Source: Octopus bimaculoides (lineage: Eukaryota). From it: DNA of 41,947 bases. The notes beneath the pieces are model-generated. The model searched no databases. It was not told the origin of the DNA and worked only from the letters and a program-made list of their open reading frames with translations. The stretch is taken from positions 100,279,493 through 100,321,439 of the forward strand of contig NC_068982.1 of assembly GCF_001194135.2 (NCBI RefSeq), given 5' to 3'. This document shows, piece by piece, positions 5,585-33,854 of this stretch; the stretch's first letter is position 1; the number at the start of each line of letters is the position of its first letter. The translations under genes and the position numbers were made by a program.

Positions 5585-5948
5585 CTATGGGAAAAACAAA
5601 GGCTTTTTGACTTCAAATTTTGTAGTGCTTCTATCTTGATATATTTCATAAGGATCATCTGGGAAATATCTTTTCTTCAGCCAGTGACGAGAAACCATTT
5701 TCTCTAATTTCTTAGATTGAGTCTTGTTGCAAAAAACTGTTTCTTGGAGCCTGAAAATACGCCTGCTGGATTTAGCCCAACGTTTATTATTTCGACCAGA
5801 TCTTGCTCTAATCCAAAGTCCAGATCTCAAGCGATAAAATCGACTTATTACAGCTGAACTAGATTTTGGTCTGCCTCTTTTATAGCTACAAACTATTTTA
5901 TTTCGAATGCTTATGACATTAGGTGTCTGTGGAGCACTCAGTAGTTTT
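5585..5948 (-). CDS. MRPL35: Mitochondrial ribosomal protein L35 (bL35m), coding exon 3 (terminal; contains the L35 domain)
   Basis: [75 protein letters not shown] matches recalled vertebrate MRPL35 ([44 protein letters not shown]). Acceptor ttttgtcttcttccag|A, phase 2. TAG at 5587-5585. Confidence 0.95.
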
Positions 5949-6194
5949 CTGGAAGAAGACAAAAAAATATGATGAATGGATATTTAAAAATATAGGTTTC
6001 TTATGACAATACAACAAAGTTTATTTTCTTTTTATAAGCAAGAATAGTATCAATTTAAATATATTTACTATAAGTATTTGTGAACTTCAAAAGCTGAAAA
6101 GTGAAAGTAACCTTGGAGCAATTTGAACAGAGAATGTGTCACTGAATTAGTTACAAAACTGCCATTCTTATGAAAATACTATTCATTCTTAGGA

Positions 6195-6400
6195 ATCATC
6201 ATCATTTAATGTCTGTTTTCCATTCTGGCATGGATTGGATGGTTCGACAGGAGCCAGCCAGCTGAAGAGCTGCCCAGGTTCTACAGCTAGATGCTCTTCA
6301 TAACACCAACTACTTTACAGTGTACTGGGTGCTTTTATGCAGCATCAGCACAGGTGTATTTACGTGGCACCAGCACCCATGAGTCACAAGATTAGGATCA
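6195..6400 (-). mobile_element. RTE-tail SINE-like element
   Basis: catcatcatttaatgtc...gatgctcttcataacaccaactactttacagtgtactgggtgc matches the family. Confidence 0.75.
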
Positions 6401-6454
6401 CTCAGCTGGAGAGGGATGCAAGGCTCAAGCCTGTATGCAAGGGCAACCACACTT

Positions 6455-7230
6455 TTATTTAGCTTTGTGTGTTTTCTCAAGCACAGCAAACCACCAGGAA
6501 CCTTGGTCCCCTATCATTCCCTGTGAGTCCCAAAGTCAGTAGATCCTTTCTCACCACTTCATTCCACGCTTCCCTGGGTCTACTCGTTCCACATGTTCCC
6601 TCTACTGTTAGAGACTGGTACCTTTTGATGCAACTGTCTTCATTCATATGCGTTACACGGCCATACCAGTACAGTCTTCTCTCTTGCACACTACACTAAA
6701 TCACTTACACTCTGTCACATATGCACACTGATATTACTCAACCAGTGGAGCATACTGGCTTCATTTCTTTCAAGCCTTCTCATATCCTCAATAGTCACAG
6801 CCTATGTCTCACTGCCATGTAGCATAACTGTTTGTAGACAGGCATCACACAACCTGTGTTTCACTCTGAGGTAGAGGCCCTTCGTTATCAGATATAGCAG
6901 CTTTCTGAACTTTGCCCATCCTATTCTTATTCTAGCAGCTAAGCTTTCAGAACAACATCCCCCACTACCAACTTGGTCACCTAAGTAATGGAAACTGTCT
7001 ACTACTTCTAAGGAGTCTATTTTTTATTCATTTGACATTTGAGTGAGTCTACTTTTTATTCATTCCTGGTGTTTAATGCACTTGTACATCTCTTAGTCTT
7101 CCAGTAATATTGCTGCACCCCTTATGTATCCACAGCTTGCACTAAGTACACTGTATGGAGTGTCTCCCAACACCTTTTCAATATATCGATCAGGGCCATC
7201 TCCCTGAAAGGATCTGTGATTTGTCTGGTT
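6455..7230 (-). mobile_element. RTE-type LINE 3' fragment
   Basis: MQERRLYWYGRVTHMNEDSCIKRYQSLTVEGTCGTSRPREAWNEVVRKDL is the typical C-terminal region of RTE ORF2. Confidence 0.85.
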
Positions 7231-7264
7231 CAATGCAATTCAATCAGAATTATTCATCACATAG

Positions 7265-7425
7265 GCAAGGTCATGGCTGTGTGTTTAAGAAGTTTGCTTC
7301 ATAACAACATGATTTCAGGTTCAGTCCCACTGTGTGACATCTTGTGCAAGTGTCTTCTAGTAGTGTCCAAATCTTTATGAGTGAATAATTTGGAATGCAG
7401 AAATGGGAAAAAAACCTGGTGTGTA
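7265..7425 (+). mobile_element. tRNA-derived SINE with CORE-like segment
   Basis: catggctgtgtgtttaagaagtttgc..ggttcagtcccactg..cttgtgcaagtgtcttct, with A/B-box-like head. Confidence 0.8.
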
Positions 7426-7429
7426 TGTG

Positions 7430-30900: not shown

Positions 30901-30988
30901 CTAGTAATTCCAAATAACTCTTGATCACTTTACTAGTTCATCTGGGTGCTGTTTTGAGTTGAAAACCTTCTGTATTGATTACTTCTAG

Positions 30989-31212
30989 GTAAAAAGATGT
31001 CTGAAGAGGACCTGAACTCATTGATTGTTCATGCCCACACTCGCATTGATCAGTTACAGAAACAGCTTGCTAAACAGGTTGCCCTGGAGCAGGAGAGGTT
31101 CCAAGAAGCAGTGTGCGAACAACGGGCAGATGATGCCAGAATGGCTGATATAAGGCTGAATGAAGAGTTAGACTATGCTAAGAAACAATTTGAAATTGAA
31201 AAAGAAAAATTA
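30989..31212 (+). CDS. IMMT: MIC60 exon 11 (SKKMSEEDLNSLIVHAHTRIDQLQKQLAKQ...EKEKL)
   Basis: Hallmark DLNSLIxHAHxRIDQL motif. ttctag| acceptor and TTA|gtaagt donor, phase 1 to 0. Confidence 0.97.
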
Positions 31213-32308
31213 GTAAGTATCCATTTAAATAAAAATAAGAAAAAACACTACTTGAATATTTCAGATTGGCTTGATGTAAAGACTGACCATCATCATCATC
31301 ATTTAATGTCTATTGTCCATGCTGACATGAGTTGGGCGTGTAAAACTGTTAATGTAAAACTGTTTTTATTATTACTGAACATAAAAACAAACATTAATAT
31401 ATGTGTGTGTGTGTGTGTGTGTTTGGGCATAAAATGAATGCACTGCATCTTCAACATAGAAGTGTAAACTATTAGCTTTATTTAGTAGTGTTACTTATGG
31501 GGAAAATAAACCATAAAGTTAAGTAGATTATTTTTTAGTGATAGACTTGTCTGATATATTAATCTGCACTACATATATATTCAATCAGTGGTTCAATATA
31601 TGATTATTCTGAGCTTCCATTATTTAAAAAAAAACAACTTTATCCAATGTCAATAATTATAAGGGAATATAATCAAAAACATGACCTCATACTTAATGCA
31701 GTATCTCTTGTCTACCATCAGTTATTCAATTTTTTTTTACTTACTGAGTCCGGAGGAAGGGACATTGCCAATGATCTTTACAATCATGAAACCAATGAAC
31801 TTGATGCCATTAATTGGTTATGTTAGTGCTATAGTTACTGTTCAAACAGACCTGTCTAATGATAGCCATTACCTTATTCTCTTGCTCTCAAAATCTCAGG
31901 ATCTTGTTTGTGAGAAAAACCATGCCAAAACAGACAGTGAAGCCTGGTCAGCTCCTGTCAAACTGTCCAACCCATGCCAGTATGGAAGGCAGACGTTAAA
32001 TGATGATGATGATAATATATATATATATATATATATATATATATATATTTTTTTTTTTTTNNNNNNNNNNNNNNNNNNNNNNNNNNNNNNNNNNNNNNNN
32101 NNNNNNNNNNNNNNNNNNNNNNNNNNNNNNNNNNNNNNNNNNNNNNNNNNNNNNNNNNNNNNNNNNNNNNNNNNNNNNNNNNNNNNNNNNNNNNNNNNNN
32201 NNNNNNNNNNNNNNATATATATATATATATATATATACATAGCTCATCATGTGAGTTTATGTAAAAATTTGACAAAAATTTGGAGTAAATTGCAATTTTT
32301 TTTTTTAG

Positions 32309-32537
32309 CTGAGGAAATCTGCAATTCAATTTGAAGAAGATTTACGATCACATCTAGCACGTCAAGCTGCAGCTCATAGTTGCCACCTGAAGGATGCTCT
32401 CGAAGTACATGAAAAAGAACTTGAGACAGAGTTTGATAAGAGACTCAATATGAAGATTCTGGAAGAACGTGCTACCTTCCAGACAGAGATGTCTGGTTGG
32501 ATTGGTCGGCTGAAAGGTATTGAAGCTGCAGTTGAAG
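32309..32537 (+). CDS. IMMT: MIC60 exon 12 (FEEDLRSHLARQAAAHSCHLKDALEV...RLKGIEAAVE)
   Basis: Hallmark RQAAAH..HL and RL.GIE.AV motifs. (t)nag| acceptor and G|gtaggt donor, phase 0 to 1. Confidence 0.97.
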
Positions 32538-32659
32538 GTAGGTCATTTTAGCTTTTTGTTTATCATTCTAATTTCAATATTTAATATTTTCTATTCTGTG
32601 TTAAAAAAAACATTGCTGGCTTTTCAAAAAGCTGAATCAGCATTTTGCTTTTTTTTTTT

Positions 32660-33058
32660 TGTTTGATCGTTGCCAGTGCCGATGGACTGGCTCCTGTGCA
32701 GGTGACACATAATACACCATTTCGAGCATGGCCTTTGTCAGTAAGACATCCAAGCAAGATCGTTGCCAGTGCCGATGGACTGGCTCCTGTGCAGGTGGCA
32801 TGTAAAATGCATCAATTTGAGCGTGGCCGTTGCCAGTACCTGCCTGACTGGCCCTCGTGCCAGTGGCACATAAAAGCACCCACTGCACTCTCGGAGTGGT
32901 TGGCGTTACGAAGGGCATCCAGCTGTAGAAACTCTGCCAAATCAGATTGGAGCCTGGTGTCGCCTCCTGGTCCACCAGTCCTCAGTCAAATCGTCCAACC
33001 CATGCTAGCATGGAAAGCGGACGTTAAACGACGATGAGGATGATGATGATGATGATGA
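32660..33058 (+). mobile_element. Young RTE-tail SINE-like element with a duplicated internal 40-bp unit
   Basis: gatcgttgccagtgccgatggactggctcctgtgcaggtg occurs twice. CpG-rich, with a (GAT)n tail. Confidence 0.85.
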
Positions 33059-33234
33059 CACTTGAGAAACCTTAAATGGCAGAAAACTGAAAATGTTCTG
33101 TCTCTTATAAATCTATCACCTTGTATACATGTAAGAACATTAAAATTGTTGTTAGTGTTGTTTTTCTTTCATAAGTTTATGAAGTTGTATTAATTGTAAA
33201 TTGCAATGTCTCTTTTTTTTTTTTTTGTCTTTAG

Positions 33235-33854
33235 CCCGAGCAGAAACAGAGAAATTAGCTAAACAAGCTCAAGAGTTATGGCTGGCTTGTGTAGCTCTTA
33301 ATGGTGTCATTCGACAGGGGCGTAAAAATATACTATCTAATGAAAACCAATTGAAACCGCTGAAGAAAGAAATCAGAACAGTTACTGATGCCGGGCAGAA
33401 CCATCCATTTGTGACAACAATCTTAAACTCTATCCCTGCAGTGGCAATTGAACGTGGAGTTTGGACAGAGGATGCTCTGAAGGAGCGTTTTGTTAAAGTG
33501 AAAAAAGTGTGTAAAAATGTGGCTATGATAGAAGCTCCAGGCGCGTCTTTGTTTAAGTATTTCCTCTCCTACTTACAGTCGTTTCTTATATTTGAGGCTG
33601 CATACATCAAGATAGAGAAAGATCCAATAAATGTTGAAGAACTGACTACGTTTGCCATATTGGCCAATGCCGACCATTATCTTGAAAAAGGTGATATTGA
33701 GAGAGCTGTGCGCCTCATGAACCAATTACATGGCCAGTCCCGGTATGTGGCTTCAGATTGGCTTCAGGAAGCCAAATTGTTCCTCGAGACACGACAAGCT
33801 GCTGAAGCTCTCATTGCATTTGCAGCAGCCCGAGGACTAGGACAGTTATTTTAG
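33235..33854 (+). CDS. IMMT: MIC60 exon 13 (terminal; lipid-binding and mitofilin domain)
   Basis: AQELWLAC, GVWTEDALKERF, SLFKYFLSYLQSFL, GDIERAVRLMNQLHGQSRYVASDWLQEAKLFLETRQ. Phase-1 acceptor. TAG at 33852-33854. Confidence 0.98.

Follow-up and report, generated by a model that had tools for sequence, protein, structure and literature searches.

A head-to-head IMMT-MRPL35 gene pair of Octopus bimaculoides shared by several bilaterian phyla, with a putative bidirectional promoter in its short spacer

How do two unrelated genes remain neighbours in a cephalopod, in spite of the reorganisation of coleoid genomes, if the same two genes also lie side by side in mammals? This question is raised by a stretch of Octopus bimaculoides DNA of 41.9 kb (NC_068982.1, positions 100,279,493 to 100,321,439; in the following, the window), in which MRPL35 is encoded by the minus and IMMT by the plus strand. 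MRPL35 encodes bL35m, a protein of the large subunit of the mitoribosome, while IMMT encodes MIC60, the core subunit of the cristae-junction complex MICOS. Both genes are divergent with their 5' ends facing each other, 97 bp (12183-12279) separate their ATG codons, and no gene or open reading frame (ORF) lies in between, making them immediate, non-paralogous neighbours. A preliminary description of the window had noticed this arrangement, had pointed to the same pair in human and had proposed that it survived since the protostome-deuterostome split, as a sign of a conserved regulatory link, provided that the DNA came from a cephalopod. The latter agrees with the collinearity of the window with Octopus vulgaris OX597815.1 (about 85-94% nucleotide identity, introns included), and both genes were found on opposite strands where they had been placed. 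We consider the pair best explained, with a probability of about 0.6, as an ancestral 5'-5' pair of housekeeping mitochondrial genes which has been kept in invertebrates by a compact bidirectional promoter.

The MRPL35 product of 197 amino acids (aa) scored 43.7 bits against Pfam PF01632 (Ribosomal_L35p; cut-off 28.9), its best solved relatives are mammalian mitoribosomal bL35m chains (PDB 4ce4_8 and 3j7y_3, E=2e-25), and its closest protein is bL35m of O. vulgaris with 91-93% identity, followed by that of Argonauta hians with 70%. The IMMT model of 723 aa aligned with Pfam Mitofilin (PF09731) over positions 11-613/614 in a single stretch (373 bits, E=4e-111). In O. vulgaris, the annotated starts of Mitofilin and L35p coincide with the two ATGs of the window, and the genes are likewise head-to-head at 97 bp. 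Argonauta hians reveals the same orientation with a spacer of 86 bp, its annotated MRPL35 ATG being located three codons further upstream (MSAMACF... versus MACV...).

For other animals, MRPL35 or IMMT was looked up in annotated assemblies and the neighbours were read within 10 kb, the annotated gene ends used for spacer lengths being the ATG codons. The head-to-head arrangement was found in the gastropod Pomacea canaliculata (287 bp), the nemertean Tubulanus polymorphus (203 bp), the hemichordate Ptychodera flava (333 bp) and the mammal Marmota, in which Mitofilin (-) and MRPL35 (+) are 4129 bp apart and REEP1 follows downstream. A metagenome scan for MRPL35 yielded 34 host contigs, the termite ones alone being informative for IMMT. 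Their last MRPL35 coding exon is 93% identical to that of Cryptotermes secundus. In five of these contigs, the IMMT exon with the putative transmembrane segment (Pfam Mitofilin positions 9-54, E=4e-5) was recognised; it is encoded by the other strand and lies about 2.5 kb upstream, counted from the first MRPL35 coding exon that can be recognised. The first exons of the termite genes could not be fixed, and hence the termites are listed without an exact spacer length. Three host contigs (L013, L017, and L018) showed repeats and no recognisable IMMT upstream of MRPL35, which is no evidence of absence, as the first IMMT exons are poorly conserved. Look-ups by the 3' exon of IMMT stopped short of the 5' end in one contig (L009) and ended at the contig edge in another (L010). 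Protein searches with single exons reached close relatives or exon fragments only, and a profile of 138 sequences gave mostly vertebrates.

In human, IMMT and MRPL35 are presumably also divergent, as the result for Marmota suggests, with a spacing that we take to be a few kb. The adjacency is present on both sides of the protostome-deuterostome split, namely in Mollusca (Pomacea and the octopods), Nemertea (Tubulanus), Insecta (termites), Hemichordata (Ptychodera) and Mammalia (Marmota), and fits what is expected of a microsyntenic pair. The published human gene order PTCD3-IMMT-MIR4779-MRPL35-REEP1 (PMC10742694), given as order only, is in line with this. The claims that mammals share the pair and that it has been kept since the split were thus upheld; it was not found unlinked in human or in most intermediate lineages, yet a whitefly, a mite, a tunicate, a teleost and Trichoplax do not show it as an intact pair. 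The neighbours on the outer sides of the pair vary among the animals in which they were identifiable (REEP1, RRP12, a HEAT-repeat protein, DUF4500, and EDRF1), that of the octopods being without a family assignment, and therefore only the two-gene unit is conserved.

Since the same two genes are immediate divergent neighbours in five phyla, the arrangement is not one of chance. It could have arisen separately in molluscs, nemerteans, insects, hemichordates and mammals, e.g., by selection for mitochondrial co-expression, and both the patchy distribution (no pair in the hemipteran, mite, tunicate, teleost and placozoan sampled) and the fact that the spacers cannot be aligned between phyla would agree with such convergence. 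However, among some 20,000 genes the same two would have had to become adjacent in the same orientation on at least five occasions, while independent loss by rearrangement is common and documented even for HSPD1-HSPE1 (PMC3514665), and we regard convergence as very improbable. As judged from the gene orders compared here, the head-to-head pair is ancestral at least to Bilateria, with repeated losses, because separate losses are a far more economical assumption than five separate gains. Tunicates and mites have highly rearranged genomes, and the lineages without the pair are mostly of this kind.

What could have held the two genes together is suggested by the spacer. The window is AT-rich, with a GC content of 0.36 and an observed/expected ratio (o/e) of CpG of 0.28. 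In 200-bp bins around the spacer, CpG o/e rises to 0.8-1.0, and over about 1.8 kb round both starts (11400-13200) it amounts to 0.55-1.05, mostly 0.8-1.0, as would be expected for a promoter island free of methylation in an otherwise methylated genome. The spacer contains a CCGGAAG motif of the ETS/GABP type, which is the only copy in the window (0.52 expected over its whole length), and a second ETS core nearby. The GABP/ETS motif directs bidirectional transcription in human (PMC2077898), and 5'-5' orientation together with short spacers is the signature of co-regulated conserved pairs (PMC3514665).

With ATGs 86-333 bp apart, the transcription starts in invertebrates are very likely separated by less than 1 kb, and as such a spacer appears too short for two independent promoters, it is most likely one bidirectional promoter; a shared compact promoter in invertebrates is accordingly regarded as likely. 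The location of the spacer in the CpG-retaining part of the window and the invariance of both ETS cores across Octopus and Argonauta support this. The spacer would then act as one compact promoter firing both ways, driven in octopods at least partly by the two conserved ETS/GABP-type sites, and IMMT and MRPL35 would be expressed together as a consequence. A breakpoint between them would damage both promoters and be deleterious, and therefore the pair would survive while its neighbours are reshuffled. In mammals, the spacer would have grown to about 4 kb with two CpG-rich ends, the linkage persisting even if promoter sharing may not.

Several observations weigh against an ancestral pair kept by a shared promoter. 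In the whitefly Bemisia tabaci, the 10 kb upstream of MRPL35 contain no gene, and tblastn revealed no IMMT there. The pair is not present within 10 kb in the tunicate Clavelina, and in the teleost Sphaeramia REEP1 has been kept, with IMMT not beside MRPL35 within the same distance. In Trichoplax, IMMT follows CCDC142 and no MRPL35 lies within 10 kb; this is a single negative, by which the origin of the pair is not dated. An astigmatid mite contig has a class I/II aminotransferase and not IMMT as the divergent neighbour of MRPL35. The pair is evidently dispensable as a pair, having been lost several times. Furthermore, sampling was thin, with one species per phylum picked by what the searches returned, and the survey left out cnidarians, sponges, amphioxus, annelids, Nautilus and squid. 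No k-mer of at least 8 is common to the spacers of three or more lineages, so that no motif occurs in all of them. In Marmota, the two starts lie in separate CpG-rich ends with about 2.8 kb of CpG-poor DNA in between, which looks like two promoters, and a single shared promoter may not be assumed everywhere. Finally, the ETS argument concerns a short motif noticed after the fact.

Such points leave a serious rival. An ancestral pair might have been retained passively, simply because the tiny intergenic space leaves almost no viable breakpoint, with independent core promoters that abut or interleave and with neither a selected regulatory link nor a shared element. The spacers of 86-333 bp in all invertebrates sampled, the lack of a common motif and the repeated loss with no sign, in the genomes compared, of a replacement arrangement would all suit this explanation. 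The mammalian pair can be read in both directions, as it persists despite a 4.1-kb spacer with two CpG-rich ends, but persistence at about 4 kb is harder to explain by breakpoint space alone. Moreover, hardly a base of the octopod spacer differs between Octopus and Argonauta, its ETS cores included, a 13-mer, AAGGTCACGTCCC, is found in both the nemertean and the hemichordate spacer, and co-expression is elevated among conserved 5'-5' pairs in general (PMC3514665). Passive retention has to be taken seriously, though it seems clearly less probable to us than an ancestral pair held by a compact bidirectional promoter.

A word as long as the 13-mer shared by the Tubulanus and Ptychodera spacers was obtained in 17 of 3000 shuffles. 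It stands at L047:9806-9818 and L046:9756-9768, on the IMMT side, and contains an AGGTCA half-site of the nuclear-receptor type; the Tubulanus spacer additionally has TCAAGGTCA, and TCAAGGAGAA is common to the spacers of Octopus and Pomacea. A bolder version would see in the pair a regulatory unit inherited from the bilaterian ancestor, in which a single promoter couples a MICOS core subunit to the supply of a mitoribosome protein, the spacer elements being ETS/GABP-type sites in molluscs and the mammal, and AAGGTCACGTCCC in the nemertean and the hemichordate. We put this forward tentatively and consider it rather doubtful in this full form. The conserved regulatory link between IMMT and MRPL35 supposed in the preliminary description is a plausible hypothesis.

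Two further observations on the neighbourhood of MRPL35 may be added. In the mite (L020:2696-4886), MRPL35 is head-to-head with the class I/II (aspartate-type) aminotransferase gene, with a few tens of bases between the ORFs. A study on Drosophila MIC60 lists RT-PCR primers for mRpL35 alongside primers for a dMIC60 allele with a PiggyBac insertion (PMC5683758), which suggests adjacency of the two genes in Drosophila, although the text makes no such statement; a literature search on the pair by Drosophila CG numbers gave no match.

The gene models on which the comparison is based are compiled in Table 1. Six-frame translation of the window showed an L35 domain on the minus strand at 5588-5983, and the MRPL35 exons were placed with the O. 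vulgaris and Argonauta hians proteins as guides. The gene consists of three exons with canonical splice sites throughout and reads from the ATG at 12182-12180 (-) to the stop codon at 5587-5585 (-), whose last base is 5585. Exon 3 matches residues 76-197 of O. vulgaris bL35m (P0001) with 91% identity in tblastn. Intron 1 harbors a degenerate relic of a Mos1/mariner transposase at 11321-11500 (-), more widely about 10756-11585 (HTH_48, E=1e-11), which lies about 0.7 kb from the putative shared promoter.

Table 1. Coordinates of the MRPL35 and IMMT exons, the spacer elements and the intronic assembly gaps in the window (^, splice junction).
Feature	Position	Strand	Remarks
MRPL35 exon 3	5585..5948	-	L35 domain and stop; PF01632 E=1.6e-11; acceptor ttcttccag^A
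MRPL35 exon 2	9383..9584	-	tblastn with P0001 residues 10-77, 91%; acceptor tttttttag^TT, donor CA^gtaagt
MRPL35 exon 1	12155..12182	-	MACVRQGFR + G; donor gtgagt; same ATG as annotated O. vulgaris start L001:10001
Spacer, putative shared bidirectional core promoter	12183..12279	.	near-identical in O. vulgaris, largely conserved in Argonauta; GC 0.54
ETS/GABP-type site CCGGAAG	12228..12234	-	invariant in three octopods
Second ETS core AGGAAG	12251..12256	-	some 20 bp away from CCGGAAG; unchanged among window, O. vulgaris and Argonauta
IMMT exon 1	12280..12318	+	MWKSSRGVSARLR; donor gtagga; ATG matches annotated O. vulgaris (L001:9903) and Argonauta Mitofilin starts
IMMT exon 2	16198..16286	+	rest of putative presequence; donor caa^gtgagt, 8/9; basic, presequence-like peptide; fits full model
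IMMT exon 3	17085..17276	+	putative transmembrane segment; Mitofilin 10-48; 84% identical to Argonauta exon; donor TA^gt conserved there
IMMT exon 4	17805..17865	+	splice sites and phase
IMMT exon 5 (40 nt)	19323..19362	+	top candidate among phase-compatible exons; pyrimidine tract of acceptor 16/20, donor 8/9
IMMT exon 6 (putative coiled coil)	19975..20166	+	conserved in O. vulgaris (91%) and Argonauta
IMMT exon 7	22926..23050 (or 22911-23050)	+	81% identical to Argonauta; both acceptors conserved there
IMMT exon 8	24807..24904	+	sole strong phase-compatible exon; donor 8/9
IMMT exon 9	26134..26269	+	44% identical to collinear exon L009:4661-4789 (unrelated invertebrate contig)
Assembly gap, IMMT intron 9	27691..27700	.	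N run
IMMT exon 10	28491..28617	+	Mitofilin positions 235-275; collinear exon in L009
Assembly gap, IMMT intron 10	29196..29205	.	N run
IMMT exon 11	30989..31212	+	Mitofilin positions 276-347
Assembly gap, IMMT intron 11	32061..32214	.	N run; P0005 joins exons 11, 12 and 13 directly
IMMT exon 12	32309..32537	+	Mitofilin positions 357-431, E=3e-15
IMMT exon 13	33235..33854	+	C-terminal mitofilin domain; Mitofilin positions 428-613, E=5e-55; stop 33852-33854

IMMT was resolved into 13 GT-AG exons, reading from the ATG at 12280-12282 to the stop codon at 33852-33854 and encoding 723 aa, or 728 aa with an alternative acceptor at 22911, compared to annotated lengths of 730 aa in Argonauta, 734 in Pomacea, 735 in Tubulanus and 702 in O. 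vulgaris. In the six-frame translation, a plus-strand series of Mitofilin exons was visible, the final one of 206 aa corresponding to profile positions 428-613/614. No full-length cephalopod IMMT was retrieved; the model was built from splice sites and reading-frame phases and was compared, as a check, with DNA of Argonauta, with P0005, a transcript-like fragment from a related cephalopod, with the unrelated invertebrate contig L009 and with Pfam. The human IMMT sequence served as a rough guide only in exon finding. Conservation between the window and O. vulgaris was useless for this purpose, the introns being as conserved as the exons. Read by eye, the protein displays a basic N-terminus (MWKSSRGVSARLRRCC...), a hydrophobic stretch (WILGTGLTGFTGVIGYAW) and then Lys/Glu-rich exons, which may correspond to the presequence, the single transmembrane segment and the coiled coil expected of MIC60.

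Some exons deserve a comment. Six open exons that are entered in phase 0 and left in phase 2 are available between exons 1 and 3, and of these exon 2 scored best. The peptide of exon 8 resembles, by eye, human IMMT, which is a lead and not a test. Exon 7 has two acceptor AGs 15 nt apart (22911/22926; around 1735-1750 in L002), and the intervening 15 nt are identical in Octopus and Argonauta; these paired acceptors suggest alternative 3' splice sites with or without 5 aa (ALVLI). O. vulgaris OX597815.1 is locally noisy, with many indels at L001:4690-4960, which corresponds to IMMT exon 3, a region in which the window and Argonauta agree, unlike the O. vulgaris assembly. This noise may be behind the shorter annotation of 702 aa.

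Given five N gaps in the window and a noisy O. vulgaris assembly at IMMT exon 3, one could ask whether the pair is an artefact of mis-assembly round gaps or of mis-annotation. The nearest gap, however, is 15 kb away from where the two genes start, two further octopod assemblies, each independent, have the same junction sequence, and the arrangement has been annotated independently in four other phyla, which makes an artefact extremely improbable. Three of the gaps fall into IMMT introns 9, 10 and 11. They are intronic and no IMMT exon has been lost, because the exon phases agree across them (0/0, 1/1, and 0/0), the Mitofilin profile is matched in one piece, P0005 reads through exons 11-12-13, and L009 has equivalents of exons 9, 10 and 11 in the same order. 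Judged from this, the gaps hide intronic sequence and leave the gene model and the finding of the gene pair unaffected.

The two further gaps (34288-34658 and 35757-35998) are situated outside the pair, in a very AT-rich stretch just downstream of IMMT (34001-36000; GC 0.19, lowered by about 600 N) with TA/CA microsatellites. Still further downstream of IMMT, broken ORFs at 37242-37700 (+) are mariner DDE-like (e.g., PPYSPDLAPADFHLFPKMK), the ORFs at 37349-37528 and 37467-37625 giving no Pfam match at E<=0.01. A short interspersed repeat, with translations of the type ...HHHHRLTSAFHASMGWTI... / ...SDWSLV...SQSNRPTHASMESGR, recurs on both strands through introns and flanks, e.g., at 22160-22384, 27253-27549, 32989-33168 and 36047-36205, among many other copies. 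A search of the window against Rfam gave no match.

Among known systems, HSPD1-HSPE1 (HSP60/HSP10), a pair with a bidirectional promoter and the archetype of conserved 5'-5' pairs, for which such a promoter is the standard explanation, is quite similar to IMMT-MRPL35. In both, the 5' ends of two nuclear genes that encode mitochondrial proteins face each other across a very short spacer, both being retained across animals and lost in some lineages, which for HSPD1-HSPE1 are the flies (PMC3514665). In contrast, the products of HSPD1-HSPE1 form one complex, whereas IMMT and MRPL35 act in different machines (MICOS and the mitoribosome), and the pairing of the former reaches unicellular holozoans and fungi, while that of the latter was not found within 10 kb in Trichoplax and is loose (4.1 kb) in the mammal. 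The conserved ancestral microsyntenic pairs (CAMPs) of Irimia et al. 2012 (PMC3514665) are likewise non-paralogous neighbours adjacent across phyla; among them, the 5'-5' orientation is over-represented, tends to be conserved and shows short spacers, and co-regulation was proposed for this subclass. That work is a statistical survey, whereas IMMT-MRPL35 is described here from a handful of genomes. The octopus spacer also resembles the human GABP/ETS bidirectional promoters (Collins et al. 2007, PMC2077898) in having starts predicted to be less than 1 kb apart, in retaining CpG and in its CCGGAAG-type site, but that human class was defined by mapped transcription start sites and by chromatin immunoprecipitation (ChIP) and reporter data, and the octopus spacer is known from sequence alone. 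The 4.1-kb spacing of Marmota, and likewise the few kb that we presume for human, lie outside the 1-kb definition of bidirectional promoters.

The question of which ancient linkages survived the reorganisation of coleoid genomes was also addressed by Schmidbaur et al. 2022 (PMC9023564), to whose method the IMMT-MRPL35 pair is invisible because blocks need at least three genes; Mitofilin and L35p were not found in those parts of the supplement text that were accessible to us. The pair is also absent from the portions searched of the supplements of a 2025 study on human divergently paired genes (PMC12672016) and of PMC2871058. No paper was found that names IMMT-MRPL35 as conserved or bidirectional, within a search that did not cover the list of Irimia et al. 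2012, in which the pair may already stand, and the papers that name both genes are gene lists. The kind of phenomenon is well known, and IMMT-MRPL35 is a new, well-supported case of a conserved 5'-5' pair. About 600 conserved gene pairs are known, most of them 5'-5'.

With hundreds of conserved pairs known and the 5'-5' orientation dominant, a result of this kind was otherwise to be expected. It enlarges, by one documented case, the small group of non-paralogous pairs known to have been head-to-head since early bilaterians, here with genes for two different mitochondrial machines, and indicates that such cephalopod pairs escape analyses limited to blocks of at least three genes. With 97 bp and two ETS cores, the octopus spacer is short enough to be studied directly in reporters. 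If the reading as a shared promoter is true, the spacer would represent a simple cis-regulatory link between cristae biogenesis and mitochondrial translation, and if the pair should be a regulatory unit of bilaterian age, selection on this coupling would explain its survival through the reshuffling of coleoid genomes.

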